Below, piece after piece: positions 54,537-64,000 of a stretch of 64,000 bases of DNA (the first letter of the stretch is position 1; the number at the start of each line of letters is the position of its first letter). Origin of the DNA: Amoebophrya sp. A120 (Eukaryota > Protista > Dinoflagellata); assembly GCA_905178155.1 (NCBI GenBank), contig CAJINV010000017.1, positions 488,722 through 552,721 on the forward strand. The letters are read 5' to 3'. A program made the position numbers and the translations under genes. The notes below the pieces were generated by a model. It was not told where the DNA came from. It worked only from the letters and a program-made list of their open reading frames with translations, and made no database searches.

Positions 54537-56920
54537 ATGTTTCCCTGTCCGTGGGAAGTCGCTGAGGAGTGCGTCGAGGAAGTTGTCGGTGAGATCGTCC
54601 AGGAGGGTGGCGAGCGCATTCACTACCACCGACTCGCGGAAAAATCTACTCCCTTCGCAGCGCAGGCGGCCTCGAAAACAATACTGTCGCAGCTCGGCAT
54701 CGCCTTTGTGCGTCACGAGTCTCTGGAAAACGACGATTTCCACTTGGAAAAAATCCCAAACATACAACCCAACCCCGCGGATTACTGGGGCAGGATGCTA
54801 CGACCCATCATGCCCATGGACGAGCATGAGAGAAGAGTAAAAGCACAGGAGGACGCCGCGGCAGCGATGGCATCGCCAAGTGGGGGCGGGGGAAAAACGT
54901 CACCAGGTGCGATATTAATTTTTTTTTGTGCTTTTCGAGTGGTACTTAGAAGCGCTCCTCAGATGGCCACGCGGAGGACGGGAATGATTGTGATTCGTTA
55001 TCGACTTTCCAGCAATGAGAATGAAGTTGAGCATGATTTTTTTATTCTAGGAAGATCAAGATTCATGTAGCAGTAGGAGCGAGTAGCGCTTGCTCTGCCA
55101 TGCGAAAAGTAAAACAAACCTGACCAGGTGGTCGCAGCAAGAAAGGTGGCGCAGCCAGTTCCGACGCGGGAAAAACCGATTCCAGAATGGACGACCTGGC
55201 GAATAGAAAAACGAAATTACAGGAGGACATCCAGGAGGACGAGGAGGAAAACAAGTACCGCCAGGTCAAGGAGCGCGAGGAGAAAACCAAGCAAGAGGCA
55301 ATTGCAAAGGCGGAGAGCGACAAGAAAGCGGGGGAAGAACAGAAGAGAAGGGCGGACAAGTTGCTCGAACAGATGGCGCAACAAACCTGGACCTTTGATA
55401 CAGCGGGGAAACTGATGTGGGTCGACCCAGCAGACGGAAACAAGTATTTTTTAGCGGTTCCGGTCCTACTGTTGGAGATGCACGACTAGTCCTGTTCGTA
55501 TGCATGATAATTGTGGCGCAGCATCTGTATCTGATGTATGCATGGCGATGTGAACGTTGAGTTACGAAAACGAAAACAAAAACAATTCATTGTTTCAGGT
55601 TGCCCAAAGTAATATCGGAGATCACATCAAAGGGAGAAGCGGTCGGGAAGAAGACGAGCAAGAAACAGGGAGACAGCCCCTCACCAGAAAAGTCACCGAA
55701 GTCCAGGTCAAGGTCACCCGGAGCGAAAAAGAAACCGAAGGGCGTACTGACTTACTACTATTACTAGAACACAAATTTGTGATGCATGCTTGCGATTCTA
55801 TGTCTATCATGGTGATGGATTCTTTTGTACTAAGTAACGCAAAGGTACAATAACTTTATACGACAGCCACAATTCACCGATGGTTTCACGCGGCTACAAT
55901 CCGAGCAACCGCCGATTACAGAAACGATGAACGTAAAATCCGGCGTGACTTTGATGTCAAAGGGGCAGGTGAAAAAAGGTGGCCCATCCGACGACACAAG
56001 GATGAGCCGAACGAAATATCAGCAGTTTCTCGAGGCAGAACAGTCTGGGTAAGTGCAGCTGCGTTGGAACTTCAATCATGTGTTTTCCATATCCTTTTTG
56101 CATGAGTTTTGTAAGCATGGATTCTCGTAGTTGTATGTTCATCACCTACCTACTGCTTTTTGAGTTGATGTCTGTTTTGGTCGAGCGCGAACTCTTGGAT
56201 GCTCGTCAGCACAGTCAACTCAAAATCAAAAACAGGCAAGCAACAAGCGCAACCTTCTACACGGCGACTCAGAAGACCGAGCCTGCAGCGGCTCCAGAGT
56301 TGCCACCACTAGACGTACAACTTGTTTTGAATCTGTGATTTTCATGAAGGGACTCAATGTGTATAGGGCATGACCATTATATTGATGATTTGTATTGCAC
56401 ATGCTTCTTCTTGGTCGCATGACGAAATAGAGAGTATCAAAGCGAAAGCGACATATAGATAATCACCGACCTAATCCAAAATCAAAACTTAAACTAGGTC
56501 TCCCAAGCGTCCCCCGGCCCGAAATCCGGTGCCGGCAGTGCCGCAGGTTCCGCGCGCGGTAGCGCCGCGGGATCGCTGGACCAAGACCGTCCGGGCGGCT
56601 CCATGTTCGGCCCGCTCTCCGCACCCTCGACCACAAAAGACTGGCGGCTCAAGCGGGACGCAATCGGGAATCTCGGCCGGTTTCCCCGGCACCACGTGGG
56701 CCTGCTGGGAACCACGGCTTCCGCTGGGTTCGCCAGGTGTCTACCGCAGCCGATGCTCGGAGCCACCATGGGCCACGGCTTGAAGAAGAACGAATCCTTT
56801 TTCTTCCCCGACACGCTAACTACGAACGAGTTTGAAAGAAGCATGAGCCGCGCGAGCACGACCGGGAAGTCATTGTATCAATTCAGAACATTTTATTCTT
56901 TGTGTCTTACTTTTTTCTAG
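54537..56920 (+). CDS. Multi-exon hypothetical protein (tentatively C2orf81/DUF4639-like N-terminus)
   Basis: Frame-consistent GT-AG introns 54907-55127, 55444-55598, 55744-55866, 56049-56235, 56315-56497. QPNPADYWGR motif. 3' end uncertain; family call weak. Confidence 0.65.
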
Positions 56921-57155
56921 GTTTTATATAAACACGGTTGAAATAATTGCACCGTGCCCACGGCGTGTGGGAGTCCTCGTTTGGACTTTTTTCTGAGAGA
57001 TGTAAGTCTTGTTTTTGTTGATTCACACACACTGATCATAATGGCTGCTCGTTGTGTGCTCTGTGTCTTCTAAAACCATTCGCACGCTGCTACACCTGCG
57101 CAAGCCTCCTACTTCGCGTTGTGTCGGGCCGTCGCCGGCAGCGGATGCGCTGGCC

Positions 57156-58998
57156 ATGAGCGGCGGCGAAGGAATGGATACTAGCTCTCACGGCGAGGAA
57201 TGCAATACTGCCGTCGCGCCGATGGAGGGCACCGGCGACGACTTAACTCCTGAAGAACAACCTACGGCGTCCATGGTTCAGCCGGACAAGCGTGCTGCTT
57301 CATCTGCGGGCAACTTTTCCTTCGACGCGTTCAAACATGGCAAGTTGCAAGGCAACTTTGCAACCAACGGACCTACTGACAGTAGCATGTTCAAGAGCGA
57401 CGGATTCCAGGGCCTCAAAAAACCGTACAGCACCACTTTGGACCTCGATCATTGCATGCCGCTGGAGATGAAGCTGGAGCCGGGGGGTTACGTTGTCGGT
57501 CAAGTTTTGAACTTAGGCAAATGCAGCAAGACCGGAAATCGCACCGACGGCTACTTCTTCGTCCAGCCCATTGGATACACGAGCATCGGCGACTGGGTAG
57601 CAACCAAAAACGAATACGGAAACTACAAAGGCATCTACACGACTTTCAACTCCACGAGGGAACAGAAGCCCGGTCTCTACCAGAAGGGGACCTACTGCCG
57701 TTTCATCATCGACATTTACACTAGAGGCTGGATCGCCAAGGACCTCCACGTCATTCCATCCCCGAACTCGCCATACCACATGAGGCTCCAGGCGGGCGAG
57801 ATTTTACCTCCTAGCGGCTACACGAGCCAGCCGACGCCTGCCCCCTGGGCAGCCAGCGCCAAGACAACGGAGAACCCGCTAACTGGTGACATTATCGAAC
57901 ACTTCCCGGCGTTAGAGCAGCGCGCAACAAGTTCGTCCTCGACTACCTCCTTCGCCAACAAGACAACCACAACGGGCATCACCGAGGAGCAGGTGAGGCG
58001 AATTGTTGCCCTCGAAGTGGTGAAGGTTACTGACGTGAAGAACAAGGAAATCGCCGAGCTGAAGGGGAGATTTGAGCAGCTTGACCGGGAGCTGACTACG
58101 GTGGCTGATAACTCCGTGAGCCATCTCTGTATTCATCGCGACGATATTGACGACCTCTACGATCGCGTCGGGCGTGCGGAGGATGTGCTCTGCACGCAGC
58201 AGGACGTCATCGAATCCCACGGGAGCAGAATCACGGCGCAGGAGGAGAAGCTGGACAAATGTGAGAAACACATCTACACCAAGCTATCGAAGTCGGTCAA
58301 AGCCCTCGTGGATGATATTGATGAGGTATTGCATCGCTCTGCTTCTTCTTCTTCTTCTTCACCTTCAGTCGAGCTACAGCTTGCGCCAGAACGCCAAGAG
58401 CTGATACGCATCACACCGCCTGACCCGTCCTTCGTGCGCGTGAGTGCGCGGCGGGCCCTTTGTGGTCAACGTGGTCATGCACAGCAGGCAAGAGCGATGA
58501 TGTTGCAGCAAGAAGTAGATGTCTCTGTCGGTCCACAGTATTTTCCTCTCTCTTTCAATATTGACACTTCTGACTTCTCTCCAGATGCAGCAGCAGATGA
58601 TGGCCGTGAAGCTAACGAACGGAAAGGACCCGACAGCACCAGCACCGACGGCGCAGGCACTGTCATCGAAGACTGCAGTGCAGGGCATGGAGACGGTTGT
58701 TCCGGACTCGGAGGCACCGACGTTGCTCAGTGCCGCGTCGGAAAATCTGCATGTTTCCGCGGTCGATGCATTGCGGAAAGGAATGGTGCGGCGCAAACGA
58801 CCCGAGCGGGGCGAGATTTTGGATTTTCGCGTGACACAGGGCGAGCAAAAACGGGCGAGGGAGGTGGAAGCGCCAGGAGCCGACGACGTGGAGGAGGAGG
58901 ACCCGGTGTCGCCCATGACCAAGAGCAAGAAGACCAAGACGGACAGCAAACCAGCGGCGCCCCAGCCTCCTGCTGCTGGGAGTATGGTCGGCGCTTGA
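57156..58998 (+). CDS. Predicted spliced ORF1p of retrotransposon 2 (exons 57156-58325 and 58585-58998; 527 aa)
   Basis: GAG|GTATTG donor; pyrimidine tract, CTGAC and CAG|ATG acceptor. Junction reads VKALVDDIDE|MQQQMMAVKL and continues the coiled coil. Confidence 0.6.
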
Positions 58999-61900
58999 GC
59001 ACCCTCGTGTTTTCGAATTTTGTCGCACTTCTTGGTGTTGGGTTTTTGATTATGACCTTGTTTCTGTACTTGATGATGAACATCTCCTTGTTGCTGATTT
59101 TGGACTACCTTCCCATCGTTCTGGAATTGCTGCTGACTTTACTGCCCACACGTGCCGCGCGGTTGTTCTCGGCACCTGCAGCTTGTCCCTACGAATTGTT
59201 ATTGACCCTGATGCTGTACGTGTTGTTAAATTTCTGGACTTCGACAATCACGTTCCGCGATAAGACGGGCGCACTCGGCAGAACTTGGAGATGGTGGACA
59301 AAGAGCCGCCGGAAGCCTGGAGAGGAAGACTGTGAAACGAGGACAAAGTGCCTCGGCGTTTTCCCTGTCGAATGTGTTGGCTTCGATTCGATTTCAAGAT
59401 CTGCGAAAAACTTTGACTTACTGCTGGTTGGATTTTGGAAAGGACTTGTACTCTCTGTGCGCTCAACTCTGCGAACTGCAACCTGTCGGAAAAAGAAGAA
59501 GCGGCGTTTTGCCGCCGCTGGCTCGGTCTCATTGCGTGTTCTCCGCTCTGTCTTTTTGCTCTTCGAAGCTCTACCTGTTGCCTTTGCTGGGGGGCAGGGT
59601 GAGGATGACTCGTGTTTCAAAATCGCGAAGTACCGCCTCCGCAATACCGCGGAACGGGTTGGCCGTGCGGACGAGTATGCGGCGCTTGTTCGCCCATCCT
59701 ACTACCAGACGGTCGCGAAAGCTGCGGCGGAACGGAAGGCGGAGAAAGCTCGACGCGGCGAAGCCGCAACCGGTGGCGCGGAAACCGGCGGCACTGGGAA
59801 ACCGAATGGGGCGACATCATCTTCAGCTTCATCATCATCGTCTTCGGCATCGTCGTCATCTTCTTCTTCATCTAGCTCATCAGCACTTCCTTCCTCACGT
59901 CAGATTCCGACTGCTGCTGCGGCCTGCGACTACACCTGCTTCAACCGGGGCCCATGTGAGTACGGGGCTTTCTCCTCTTCGCGGTCCTACACGAGCAAGG
60001 TCATCACGATCACAACCCAGAACTGTCGCGAGGCCCTGATTGGAGGGAAAGCCCGCGACAAGATCCTCCGTTGCGCCCCGAAGAACACCGACAAATACGA
60101 AATTTTGGCGCTGACCGAATGCCGCTGGGGGAAGAGCGGCACGGGGCTACAGGGGGTGAGGCGGATAAATGGCGAAGTCGTGGGCGAGGTCGCTCCCGAC
60201 CTTGACAGCGACTCCGATTGTGGCGGACCACAGCCATTAGAGACTTCCGATTTTCTGTGTCGTGGCTCGGGCTTTATCTCGGTGTTAGGACCAGGCGCGG
60301 GTATAGTTTTGCGGGGTGGACCGATATACCAGGAGCTTGCGAAGCTCAGCGACCCGGACCTTGCGGCTCATTTTGTTGTACGCGAGCGCGTCGTAGTTGG
60401 ACTGTTTCGGGGCTTCACGCTTTTCTCGGTATACGCGCCAGCCTCTGGGGATAAATACGCAGTTGCCCGATTTTTCCGCGATTTGAACCGTTTTGGGCAG
60501 GAGTTGTTGCGGAAAACCGGTCGGCGGGACCTTCCCTACTTCTACGCTGGGGATTTCAATGCGCATGTCGGCAGCGACCAGTCCGGATTTGCGATCGGGG
60601 AGTTTGCCTCCTCCAAGGCTTCTAGTCCCAAAGGGGTGCAGCTGGCGCGGACTCTGGCTGCGGGGAACTTGCGGCTGGCCGACACCTTCTTCGACTTTGC
60701 CACCCAGGACTCGCGTGCAACTTTTCTGCGACGGGGCTGCGATCCAACGGAAATTGACGGGTTTGTAACGGCCGGAAGGTGGTTGGGACGGGTCTCGAGT
60801 GTCGAGCTTTGTCGCGAGCTGCGGGACGTTGTGGTGGGGAAGGAGGAGGCTGACGGCGATTATGTACTGGACCATTACGGTAAGACGCTGCGTTTCACGT
60901 GCACGCAGCCTCCACCAGAAGATGCTCCAGACGACGACAAGCGGACGGCCTTCAACTACGTGGGAGTGGTGCCCTTGACCCCGGACGTCTGTGCTTCCTT
61001 CTCGTCGAATGTGTCGGAAGTTCTTGGTGAAACTTTGCGGAAACCGGATCGGAGCTCGCCAAAGCCAACACTTCAGGAGGTTTTATCTGCTATCACGGCG
61101 AGTGAGCATCTTGTACTCGAAACCGGACCAGAGCGGCTTTTACGACAACAGGCATGCGAGAAGCACAAGAAGAAGGCTGCTGCCGAGTTGCCGCCCGTCC
61201 TCGCCGCGGACCCTAGCAAGCCCGCTAAAGTTCAGGCGGTTTGGAAGCACCTCGGCATTGCAAAGCGGCGGAAGGGGAACAGCACGGCGCCGACGGGATG
61301 GGCGAAGCACTATCTCGAGAACGTTATCCGAAAAGAAAGCAGTTCGTCGACTTTCCCTGCTGCGGATTTTGTCGAACATGTTACGGCGGCCAGTGTTGCA
61401 AGCCTCGACGCCCCGATCACAGTGGTGGAGTGGAAGCAGGCGGTGAAAGACGTGAAGGCCGGCAATGACGTACAGGTTTGGTCCAAGGAAATTTTTTCTG
61501 CACTGGATGACGCGACGACGCAGGTCCTCTTGGACGCGATCGAGGGCGACTTGCGACGGGGTGTGGGGTTGCGGGAAATTGACGAGAAATACAGGACAAC
61601 AAAAATCTCTTTGCTCCACAAAAGCGGAAGTAGGGAGGATTTGAATAATTTCCGTGGAATTAGCGGGGTGCCTACCCTCTCCAAGATTCTTGCTCATCTC
61701 TTCACGAAGCGGCTGCAGGACGTTTTGATCCGCGAGAATCTGTACGACGAGGAAAACTACGGGTTTGTGTTTGGTCGAAATGCTTCGGATGCGCTTGTGC
61801 TAGTTCGGCGCCTTGTCGAGTGCAGCCGGGATTATTCCGACTTCGAACAATTCCAGGATGTATGGGCCGCTTTTATCGATTTGAGGAAAGCTTTTCCATC

Positions 61901-63815
61901 GTTGTGTTGGAATGTTACAACGGAAATCGTGGAGCATATGGGGATAGCCTCTACCCTCGGGTGGAGAGCTCTCGCCGCTTGTCACCGTGACATCAAGTGC
62001 CGTGAAGAGCGCGAGCGGGTGAGTTTTGACTTACCATTAGGATTGCAGGAGGGCTGTCCGTCCAGTCCTTGCATCTTCGTCATGGTGTTCAGCGTGATCG
62101 GCCGGGCACTACGCCAGGCGCGTGCCTTGCTTCCTTCGCCGGGAGGTAACGTAGACCGCAGAGGGGTGCAGCTTCGCTGCGCCACGGGCACGCACGTAGC
62201 AACCGAAAAAGAGAAATTGGAGGTCTTGCTGCGGCCGTCCCAGCAGGCTTCGGTCTCCACGTCGCGCGTGGGTTCCACGAAGTTTGCGGACGACTCAAAT
62301 TTTTGGGGAGAGTCGAAAAACGGAACACCAGACTCGCACGTTCTGGATGCCACGCTGCGTGTCCTGGCTTCGGCCAGGATGGAGGAGAATTTGAAGAAGC
62401 GGGTAGTGGGCAAATTGGCAGACGTAGTGGTGAAGTTTTTAGGCATTTGGCTGTCAGACGAAAAAGACACCTCCGAGCGGATAAACCGTGCCTGGAAGGC
62501 ATTCCACGGGGCGCAGCGGCTTCTCGTCGGTTTTGGGGAGCTAAACAGGACACACCGGCGTGCCATCGTCGTGGCGCTTGTGCGGGGGACTATGCTTTAC
62601 GGTGCAAATGGTCGCTCGTTCTCGTCGAAAGAGCTCGAGGAACTGAACACCGCCGAAAGCAGTATTTTGCGCCGCCTTTTCAACACCTCGATGCGGCAGA
62701 TGGATGCGGCGCAGATTTCCCATGCTGATCTTCGTTGTCACCTCGAGATACCGCCTCTGGCTGTGGAGATCGCCTATTCAAGGCTGTCGCACGGGGGCCA
62801 CCTTCTTCGTCGGGGCCAGTCCTATCCGCCGCGGCAGGCCTTTCTTGGTCGCTTTGTTATCAGCGCCGCCGATCCTGCGATCACACCGGAATCGAAGCCG
62901 GAATTTTTCCTGCTGCCGCCAAGCTCTTCCCGCGTGCCGTCTGTCTACGAATCCTTCGTCGATGCATGTGCGTCGGCGAAGATCCCGGTCTCGGATTTTT
63001 CTTCCTACCTGGGGCAGGACTCCAGGAGAGAGTGGTACGTGAGGACGAGATCTTGGCACATTGATGCCACGATGCAGCATTGGTTTTTTCCGTCCTGGTC
63101 CTCGGCCACTTCTGACGAACGTGTTGCTGCTGCATTTGACAAGCTGCTGAAGAAGTACGGAATCACGGACCAGGAGTACGACGCTGCGTATGGTGATCGG
63201 CCGCGGGTGGCGAAGAAGCGAGCGGTCTTGAAGGCCACTCGCAGTCTGGCTGATTTACGGTCGCGGCAGATTGCCCTCGATGGGTCGATCACGGATAACC
63301 AGACGCAGGAGCTTGTTGCTTCTTCCGCTGGCGTTTACACTACTGCAAGAGGCGACGTCGGGGCCGTGCACTGTGAGGAGTGCAGTTGCGACCTGAAGGG
63401 GAGTAGACGGGCGCTCCGAGCACATTTGCGACTACACCAGCAGGACGAGTTTGTGCGACTTGTCCAGGAGCAGGATGGTGCGACTTGCACTCCGGTCGAA
63501 GAATTTATCTACGGGAGGTCGGGGCAGTCCATCATTCCACCGGCGTACAAGCAGACCGCGCGTGCTGTGTTGCCGCCTCGACGTTTTCTACCTGACGGGG
63601 CCGACAAATGGACTACTAGACAACTTACCTGCCCGTGCTGCTCGGTCCACGCCATTGATTGGCCCAGCTCCTTTCAGAAGAAGGTCGGTGCTGCGAGTCG
63701 TATAAAAACGCACGAGCGGAAGTGCGCCAACTCCAAGAAACTCGACCTTACGGCTGACCTCGATCCTATTCCGGAGTGTGCCGACGTTGAGCGACGAGGC
63801 GATGATGAGAAATGA
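57156..63815 (+). CDS. Single polyprotein (2219 aa from first ATG): CSD/OB-like, coiled coil, hydrophobic segments, APE, RT, Zn fingers
   Basis: APE: ITTQNCR, LALTECR, SVYAP, AGDFNAHVG, EIDGF, LDH. RT: LLHKSG, NYGF, DLRKAFPSL, GLQEGCPSSP, FADD (62283-62294). CEEC...HLRLH and CPCC...HERKC. Confidence 0.93.
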   Translation: MSGGEGMDTSSHGEECNTAVAPMEGTGDDLTPEEQPTASMVQPDKRAASSAGNFSFDAFKHGKLQGNFATNGPTDSSMFKSDGFQGLKKPYSTTLDLDHCMPLEMKLEPGGYVVGQVLNLGKCSKTGNRTDGYFFVQPIGYTSIGDWVATKNEYGNYKGIYTTFNSTREQKPGLYQKGTYCRFIIDIYTRGWIAKDLHVIPSPNSPYHMRLQAGEILPPSGYTSQPTPAPWAASAKTTENPLTGDIIEHFPALEQRATSSSSTTSFANKTTTTGITEEQVRRIVALEVVKVTDVKNKEIAELKGRFEQLDRELTTVADNSVSHLCIHRDDIDDLYDRVGRAEDVLCTQQDVIESHGSRITAQEEKLDKCEKHIYTKLSKSVKALVDDIDEVLHRSASSSSSSPSVELQLAPERQELIRITPPDPSFVRVSARRALCGQRGHAQQARAMMLQQEVDVSVGPQYFPLSFNIDTSDFSPDAAADDGREANERKGPDSTSTDGAGTVIEDCSAGHGDGCSGLGGTDVAQCRVGKSACFRGRCIAERNGAAQTTRAGRDFGFSRDTGRAKTGEGGGSARSRRRGGGGPGVAHDQEQEDQDGQQTSGAPASCCWEYGRRLSTLVFSNFVALLGVGFLIMTLFLYLMMNISLLLILDYLPIVLELLLTLLPTRAARLFSAPAACPYELLLTLMLYVLLNFWTSTITFRDKTGALGRTWRWWTKSRRKPGEEDCETRTKCLGVFPVECVGFDSISRSAKNFDLLLVGFWKGLVLSVRSTLRTATCRKKKKRRFAAAGSVSLRVLRSVFLLFEALPVAFAGGQGEDDSCFKIAKYRLRNTAERVGRADEYAALVRPSYYQTVAKAAAERKAEKARRGEAATGGAETGGTGKPNGATSSSASSSSSSASSSSSSSSSSSALPSSRQIPTAAAACDYTCFNRGPCEYGAFSSSRSYTSKVITITTQNCREALIGGKARDKILRCAPKNTDKYEILALTECRWGKSGTGLQGVRRINGEVVGEVAPDLDSDSDCGGPQPLETSDFLCRGSGFISVLGPGAGIVLRGGPIYQELAKLSDPDLAAHFVVRERVVVGLFRGFTLFSVYAPASGDKYAVARFFRDLNRFGQELLRKTGRRDLPYFYAGDFNAHVGSDQSGFAIGEFASSKASSPKGVQLARTLAAGNLRLADTFFDFATQDSRATFLRRGCDPTEIDGFVTAGRWLGRVSSVELCRELRDVVVGKEEADGDYVLDHYGKTLRFTCTQPPPEDAPDDDKRTAFNYVGVVPLTPDVCASFSSNVSEVLGETLRKPDRSSPKPTLQEVLSAITASEHLVLETGPERLLRQQACEKHKKKAAAELPPVLAADPSKPAKVQAVWKHLGIAKRRKGNSTAPTGWAKHYLENVIRKESSSSTFPAADFVEHVTAASVASLDAPITVVEWKQAVKDVKAGNDVQVWSKEIFSALDDATTQVLLDAIEGDLRRGVGLREIDEKYRTTKISLLHKSGSREDLNNFRGISGVPTLSKILAHLFTKRLQDVLIRENLYDEENYGFVFGRNASDALVLVRRLVECSRDYSDFEQFQDVWAAFIDLRKAFPSLCWNVTTEIVEHMGIASTLGWRALAACHRDIKCREERERVSFDLPLGLQEGCPSSPCIFVMVFSVIGRALRQARALLPSPGGNVDRRGVQLRCATGTHVATEKEKLEVLLRPSQQASVSTSRVGSTKFADDSNFWGESKNGTPDSHVLDATLRVLASARMEENLKKRVVGKLADVVVKFLGIWLSDEKDTSERINRAWKAFHGAQRLLVGFGELNRTHRRAIVVALVRGTMLYGANGRSFSSKELEELNTAESSILRRLFNTSMRQMDAAQISHADLRCHLEIPPLAVEIAYSRLSHGGHLLRRGQSYPPRQAFLGRFVISAADPAITPESKPEFFLLPPSSSRVPSVYESFVDACASAKIPVSDFSSYLGQDSRREWYVRTRSWHIDATMQHWFFPSWSSATSDERVAAAFDKLLKKYGITDQEYDAAYGDRPRVAKKRAVLKATRSLADLRSRQIALDGSITDNQTQELVASSAGVYTTARGDVGAVHCEECSCDLKGSRRALRAHLRLHQQDEFVRLVQEQDGATCTPVEEFIYGRSGQSIIPPAYKQTARAVLPPRRFLPDGADKWTTRQLTCPCCSVHAIDWPSSFQKKVGAASRIKTHERKCANSKKLDLTADLDPIPECADVERRGDDEK

Positions 63816-64000
63816 TGAATGGCGTTGCTATTCGATCTCGACCACAGCATTCTGCACTACCCATTTTTCGAATGCTGCGCTAAACGATAACGAGGACACG
63901 TCCCAAAACCCCTAGCAATCCTCCCCTATGCTAGCAAGATGATGATGATGATTTGTGCATGAAAGAAAAGGACTGACCACATTTTGAGCAGAGCGGACAC

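Follow-up and report, generated by a model that had tools for sequence, protein, structure and literature searches.

The stretch of the Amoebophrya sp. A120 genome analysed here (the window: 64,000 nucleotides (nt) of contig CAJINV010000017.1, positions 488,722 to 552,721 of the forward strand) carries a retrotransposon of the non-LTR (LTR, long terminal repeat) or long interspersed nuclear element (LINE) type. It is referred to below as element 2, or as W where it is compared with its relatives. Inside the single long open reading frame (ORF) of this element lies a 259-nt segment with the ends of a GT-AG intron, the removal of which would carry translation into another frame. We conclude from sequence comparison that the feature is real and conserved, and on balance best explained as a facultative frame-switching intron followed by an exon that is coding in two frames. 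In what follows, f0 designates the polyprotein frame of element 2 and f1 the frame reached once the segment is removed.

The segment had been proposed in a first-pass annotation made from the letters of the window, and all of its coordinates proved correct on reading the sequence. It occupies positions 58326-58584, begins with GTATTG and contains no stop in the polyprotein frame. CTGAC at 58570-58574 is followed by TTCTCTCCAG, which ends at 58584; 13 of the 15 nucleotides ahead of the CAG are pyrimidines, and the next letters are ATG. The stretch 58585-58998 is open in both f0 and f1, as annotated. Read in f1, it encodes 137 amino acids (aa; MQQQMMAVKL...SMVGA) and ends with the TGA at 58996-58998, which is also where the computed removal of the 259 nt from the continuous f0 ORF (57054-63815) leads. 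The length, 259 nt (244-298 nt in the family), agrees with the host-intron size attributed to the segment: A120 introns have a median of 247 nt, and 30% of them are GT-AG (Farhat et al. 2021, PMC7789003).

Two features reported alongside the segment carried less weight. The 9-bp inverted repeat formed by 58332-58340 and 58491-58499 (CATCGCTCT and AGAGCGATG) does exist but is not beyond chance, about 0.1 such pairs being expected in 259 nt by our own estimate, and RNA folding of the intron is no better than that of shuffled sequences (z = -0.5 for W; +0.7 and -0.5 for the introns of relatives). The likeness perceived between the f1 tail and the ORF1 tail of a further element in the window, element 1, is not significant (BLASTP E=91 for the QMMA stretch; best local match at E=12). 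Two other ways of delimiting or classifying the segment were rejected. An alternative donor, GTGAGT at 58440, also lies 3n+1 nt from the acceptor but is not conserved in the relatives. An Amoebophrya introner, a non-canonical TAT...ATA hairpin intron with short direct repeats, does not match the ends found here (GTATTG...CTCCAG) or their lack of a fold signal.

The same arrangement was found in relatives of element 2. For these comparisons the 115.5-Mb genome was searched with the segments and exons of the element queried separately. Element 2 is single-copy at the DNA level, while protein searches yielded three further ORF1-bearing relatives and hence, with W, four copies: C4 (locus L009; intact ORF, 2148 aa), C21 (L010; intact ORF, 2068 aa) and C1d, a degraded copy (the C1 relative, L011). 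Among the intact copies, identity is 30-37% for ORF1 and 54-60% for the reverse transcriptase (RT). The GT and AG ends, the phase 0 position and the 3n+1 length are conserved in 4/4 of these copies. The donors stand straight after the coiled coil in phase 0 and read GAG/GTATTG, CAG/GTAATA, CAG/GTATTT and CAG/GTAATT (the slash marks the junction), which gives the consensus AG/GTAWT in all four; the acceptor is CAG in each, and the segments, of 259, 292, 244 and 298 nt, are all free of f0 stops. The counterparts of the 58325/58585 junction are 2770/3063 in L009 and 7929/7684 in L010, these copies being located at about C4:1,485,800-1,492,300 and C21:637,200-643,700. The motif AGGTAWT occurs once in the whole W ORF, once in the C4 ORF (these two ORFs measuring 6.4-6.8 kb) and twice in the C21 ORF, the homologous position being included each time, and GTA accounts for just 11-12% of Val codons. 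A TGAC motif lies 12-21 nt 5' of the CAG in W, C4 and C21. In every copy stops close f1 within the segment, whereas from the acceptor on it stays open until a stop at the start of a hydrophobic f0 segment; the resulting tail, which the first-pass annotation took to be an open alternative frame, has no stop in any of the four and measures 87-137 aa across the family. Intron-less copies, which would be expected to be abundant if the segment were erased by retrotransposition, were not found in the own-genome searches: every ORF1-bearing copy that they returned keeps the intron.

The four f1 tails all contain a basic motif in two parts: KRxR and, 11-16 residues further on, [KR]A[KR]R or KRAR (58780-58870 of the window in f1; L009 3220-3300; L010 7480-7560). 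From its sequence, this motif looks like a nuclear localisation signal.

In order to see which frame is under selection in each part of the element, substitutions were counted by codon position between C4 and C1d, the closest pair. In exon 1 the differences at positions 1, 2 and 3 of f0 number 17, 4 and 32 (p=1.5e-5). The first 210 nt of the intron are flat in f0 (17, 20 and 20; p=0.84), over its last 80 nt the differences are in excess at the third position of f0 (5, 5 and 15; p=0.02), and in the tail at that of f1 (19, 20 and 45; p=4e-4). The ratio of nonsynonymous to synonymous rates (dN/dS) is 0.14 for exon 1 in f0, 0.40 for the intron in f0, and, for the tail, 0.32 in f1 and 1.61 in f0. 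By these counts, the selected frame in this pair is switched at the acceptor. The third-position excess in f1 together with the dN/dS of 0.32 indicates that the tail is a protein in f1. The intron values, along with indels of 9 and 3 nt between the two copies, which are in frame, point to a segment translated in f0 under weaker constraint.

The other frame of the tail is also maintained. An f1 codon is at risk when the codon after it starts with AA, AG or GA, since ending in T it would then make an f0 stop. None of the 82 at-risk codons ends in T, versus 41 of 246 other codons (p=3e-6). When the tail was resampled synonymously, the probability of f0 staying open was 0.0007 for W, 0.055 for C4 and 0.014 for C21; under shuffling, the chance of the segment itself being open in f0 was 0.054, 0.021 and 0.032, respectively. 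The dual-frame constraint predicted for 58585-58998 is thus borne out, with a purifying signature in f1 and an f0 held open by codon choice.

Between C4 and C1d (L009 1826-4700 versus L011), identity is about 96% for the first ~850 nt of the ORF and falls to 60-80% past L009 2680. The pair resembles a mosaic, of the kind that recombination or template switching between subfamilies would produce. We considered whether the drop could be linked to the donor, but it starts about 90 nt upstream of it and was set aside as a mosaic breakpoint rather than a splice feature.

These data suggest the following scheme. Element 2 is a member of a small clade of Amoebophrya sp. A120 LINEs, represented by four ORF1-bearing copies, in which a candidate GT-AG intron of spliceosomal type, 3n+1 nt long, sits where the coiled coil of ORF1 ends. 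The unspliced RNA would be read as one ORF comprising the N-terminal part of ORF1, an intron-encoded linker, the overprinted linker, hydrophobic segments, the endonuclease-like region, the RT and a Cys/His-rich region; it would be the sole mRNA for the RT and also the template that is copied. Splicing would shift the ribosome to the +1 frame, into the selected tail of 87-137 aa with its bipartite basic motif, and to a stop just before the hydrophobic segment, so that the spliced RNA would make the ORF1 protein (ORF1p) only. Splicing efficiency would then set the ratio of ORF1p to the ORF2 protein (ORF2p). That splicing occurs, and that it is partial, we infer from the sequence comparisons; cis preference, in turn, would be the reason for the inheritance of the intron. 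On the broader proposal we are evenly balanced: a LINE lineage may have recruited a spliceosomal intron to serve as an obligatory switch of expression, with one exon read in two frames and the RT made only from intron-retaining RNA, and may for that reason have carried the intron through many retrotransposition cycles while RT identity fell to 54%.

LINEs are usually described as setting the ORF1p:ORF2p ratio at translation, by reinitiation or frameshifting, and they are expected to lose introns because spliced RNA gets copied. If the switch is indeed obligatory, it would be, to our knowledge, the first LINE counterpart of the strategy of copia and BARE elements, and control of the structural to catalytic protein ratio by splicing would have arisen independently outside LTR elements. 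It would also show that an intron can persist in a retroelement over a long divergence, and would provide a natural case of cis preference shielding an intron from erasure by retroposition. Because only intron-retaining RNA would encode the RT, the element would constitute a testable natural system for cis preference. The host adds to the interest of a candidate LINE intron, its splicing being unusual: non-canonical introns make up two thirds of the total in A120, where a U1 snRNA has not been detected (PMC7789003).

Experiments have demonstrated the logic of such a switch for BARE1 (PMC3735527) and for Arabidopsis Ty1/copia elements (PMC5580714). BARE1, a barley Ty1/copia LTR element, has a single ORF with a 104-nt facultative intron whose junctions read CAG/GTAT and CAG/GA (Chang et al. 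2013, PMC3735527); splicing, demonstrated by reverse transcription PCR, causes a frameshift and a stop 3 residues after Gag. It is the closest analogue of element 2, which is an analogue of the copia-type switch and not a Ty1/copia member. In both, the unspliced RNA contains a single ORF, the short GT-AG intron is coding if retained, its removal shifts the frame so that the structural protein alone is made, and genomic copies keep it. The two differ in that BARE1 is an LTR element with virus-like particles, whereas element 2 is a LINE known here from its sequence, its intron being a candidate that comes from sequence comparison where that of BARE1 was seen by PCR. Moreover, in place of 3 residues, the shifted frame of element 2 provides a tail of 87-137 aa under purifying selection that overlaps the polyprotein frame.

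In Arabidopsis EVD, other Ty1/copia elements and Drosophila copia, a conserved alternative splicing produces a subgenomic RNA for Gag only (Oberlin et al. 2017, PMC5580714). Element 2 shares with them donor and acceptor positions kept across diverged family members. In EVD and copia, spliced and unspliced RNAs coexist and the structural protein is in excess, for which a counterpart in element 2 is only proposed. Their introns are long, span the protease or pol, are AU-rich like host introns, and are spliced in coupling with premature termination, whereas that of element 2 is short, GC-neutral and located inside ORF1 of a LINE. Arkhipova et al. reportedly described in 2003 Penelope-like elements that retain introns in genomic copies. 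These elements resemble element 2 in that their genomic copies keep a spliceosomal intron, but they form another retroelement class, with a GIY-YIG endonuclease, and their intron has no known two-product switch. Human L1 is a LINE whose RNA likewise has usable splice donors and acceptors; its splicing reportedly yields defective copies without the removed part, the SpIREs (Larson et al. 2018, PMC5860796). In the element 2 family, in contrast, all copies found keep the segment, and the post-splice frame is selected. We know of no report of L1 splicing as a conserved expression switch. Likewise, our literature search for a conserved functional intron in a LINE ORF1 returned no report, the LINE matches being those of non-conserved L1 splicing giving defective SpIRE copies (PMC5860796).

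Several observations weigh against a facultative intron. Three RNA runs gave zero reads on 56400-62300, and neither splicing nor expression was seen in them; element 2 appears silent in the available RNA data. The copies number just four, one of them degraded, and the codon-position tests rest on a single pair that is itself a mosaic. The pyrimidine tract is good only in W (13/15, versus 11/15 in C21 and 9/15 in C4). The GC content of the intron, 52-53%, is not below that of the exons, unlike host introns (mean 46.5%, with exons at 56.3%; PMC7789003), although a segment that is also translated would be expected to show just that. Among the f1 tails, sequence similarity is not significant between W and its relatives; only the pair C4 and C21 reaches z=3.3. 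Finally, the comparison could not be extended beyond this genome, as a search with ORF1 exon 1 for relatives in other species returned nothing. A profile search of 1.84 billion representatives gave one 79-aa fragment of this genome's family and two coiled-coil chance matches, two metagenome scans gave no relatives, the RT search gave nothing at E≤1e-20, and a further protein search returned only the C9 copy from the same genome.

Translation could account for the two products in other ways. If there were no splicing and the segment were ordinary coding sequence, the f1 tail could be reached by programmed +1 (or -2) frameshifting near 58516-58600, the shifted product being ORF1p and the unshifted one the polyprotein. 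A window for such a shift is present, since in W, C4 and C21 f1 is already open over the 70-166 nt that precede the acceptor; some f0 constraint acts on the segment, and splicing was not observed in the RNA runs, which gave no reads on the element. However, the surroundings of the junction contain no conserved shifty motif or homopolymer, a very high shift efficiency would be needed for an excess of structural protein, and frameshifting leaves unexplained the AG/GTAWT motif, unique in the W and C4 ORFs, the rare GTA Val codon in all copies, the conserved in-phase CAG and a 3n+1 length that stays constant despite indels. We regard this mechanism as unlikely. A similarly small probability attaches to an ordinary, efficiently spliced intron, with ORF2 translated from spliced RNA by a -1 frameshift in the 414-nt overlap or by reinitiation, an incidentally open f0, and unspliced nuclear RNA as the template. 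In the spliced RNA, ORF2 in f0 would indeed be at -1 to the ORF1 tail and overlap it extensively, a layout that many retroelements have; ORF2 of element 1 is also at -1 to its ORF1, and selection for an open f0 across the tail would fit equally well. But the tails of W, C4 and C1d contain no in-phase X XXY YYZ heptamer, and we found neither a conserved -1 slippery site nor a conserved slippery heptamer or shifty site near the junction. Past the f1 stop, the distance to the first f0 ATG is 54, 444 or 678 nt, and with such variation there is no conserved start for reinitiation. The intron is, moreover, stop-free in f0 in 4/4 copies, with in-frame indels, a dN/dS of 0.40 and an f0 third-position excess in its last 80 nt, all of which suggests that RNA retaining it is translated; and all copies keep it.

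The remaining explanations dispense with a joined ORF1 tail. The f1 frame could be expressed alone as a small protein, its start being set either by trans-splicing of a spliced leader to the AG acceptor or by internal initiation. Dinoflagellates do trans-splice a leader onto AG acceptors (PMC7789003), and W has CAG/ATG at the junction, with the ATG exactly at 58585. Yet C4, C1d and C21 have no ATG there, their first f1 Met being 13-20 codons in; residues before this Met are kept between C4 and C1d (ISL[F/Y]GKKGA), and the conserved donor motif would have no explanation. We consider separate expression of f1 very improbable. We also give little credence to the absence of any present function, in which the single ORF would be the sole product and the GT/AG pair and open f1 would be due to chance or be relics of an older two-ORF layout. 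In its favour, generic scans give many GT...AG pairs with alternative-frame tails of at least 60 aa in these GC-rich ORFs, and the element is apparently silent. This leaves aside that the f1 codon-position signal arose after the split of C4 and C1d, both of which already had the segment, that the donor motif is at the homologous position in three diverged lineages, and that f1 stops at one and the same landmark in every copy. A facultative, frame-switching intron remains the explanation that we favour.

The coordinates of the features of element 2 are collected in the table below.

Table. Features of element 2 in the window (all on the + strand).
Feature	Position	Basis or remarks
Element 2, full-length non-LTR (LINE) retrotransposon	56931..63955	3' limit approximate; RVT_1 match, 5'-truncated relatives
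5' leader, 70 nt, common to other loci	56931..57000	sequence comparison
ORF1 exon 1	57156..58325	N-terminal conserved GGYV.GQ.LNLG...F.VQP domain, then coiled-coil-like region; frame f0
Candidate 5' splice site GAG/GTATTGC	58323..58332	phase 0 of ORF 57054-63815
Candidate facultative intron, 259 nt (3n+1), translatable in f0	58326..58584	relatives also 3n+1 and stop-free
Candidate branch point CTGAC, pyrimidine tract, CAG acceptor	58570..58584	sequence
Putative dual-coding stretch	58585..58998	f1, ORF1p C-terminal tail; f0, Gly/Arg/Cys-rich polyprotein linker
Hydrophobic, membrane-like segments of the polyprotein (f0)	58992..59588	hydropathy scan; begin where f1 stops; same layout in C4 and C21
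Endonuclease-like region, possibly APE type	60003..60881	ITTQN...LTE...GDFNAH...LDHY, motifs by eye
Reverse transcriptase domain	61626..62316	Pfam RVT_1, E=3.9e-11
C-terminal Cys/His-rich region (CEECSC ... CPCCSV)	63372..63647	translation

The single open frame f0 of the element encodes 2253 aa, with the first ATG at 57156; exon 1 aligns with those of C4 and C21 at 29-33% identity and also has matches elsewhere in its own genome. The motifs ITTQN, LTE, GDFNAH and LDHY of the endonuclease-like region are kept in 5 copies. This region has no Pfam match, and a profile search gives APE2 only at E=0.54; its AlphaFold model has a predicted local distance difference test (pLDDT) score of 47, a confidence too low for a structure search. 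In the PDB, the best matches of the RT are human L1 ORF2p, a weak match, and another RT. Two relatives, at C1:6571260 and C9:459166, are 5'-truncated and start inside ORF2 or the linker; 5' truncation is the expected outcome of target-primed reverse transcription. No direct repeat of at least 25 nt was found in 56000-64000, where the window ends about 50 nt past the presumed 3' end of the element, close to which a (TGA)n run lies at ~63938-63953. An RT of LINE type, and the fact that no LTRs are seen within the window, set element 2 apart from Ty1/copia LTR elements. The 5' untranslated region of element 2 contains a short ORF (MAARCVLCVF, then a stop) at 57041-57073, upstream of the start codon of ORF1.

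The 5' end of element 2 is inferred from the common 70-nt leader (AACACGGTTGAAATAATTG...CTGAGAGA; also L045-L051). Five other loci carry this leader at 97-100% identity, and a sequence upstream of the C21 relative matches it at 80%. In every case TTTTATTT or TTTTATATA precedes the leader, while the sequences after its end, ...GAGAGA, are wholly different between loci. It has no Rfam match and could be a common 5' module or a template-switch product. On 56400-62300, the contigs of a fourth RNA run cover the host exon 56498-56874 and the 70-nt repeat, and nothing else of element 2. This exon is bounded by AG on its 5' side and by the donor GTATCA on its 3' side, with the adjacent exons outside 56400-62300. 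Element 2 begins 56 nt after this host donor, on the same strand, showing that it sits inside a host intron.

A scan of the other LINE lineages of the genome for generic GT...AG pairs with alternative-frame tails was too noisy to be used, and no analogous AG/GT site stood out. Many of these lineages (L018-L041, L052-L059) have single open frames of 2000-3800 aa, and their RT is 27-31% identical to that of element 2. Element 1 instead has its ORF2 in the -1 frame with respect to ORF1, the stop and start codons overlapping as TAATG. At two loci (L006 1492-1644 and L007 1008-1160), all that is present is 153 nt of the ORF1 domain of C4 type, 95% identical; one of the two is apparently annotated as a 79-aa protein (P0001).

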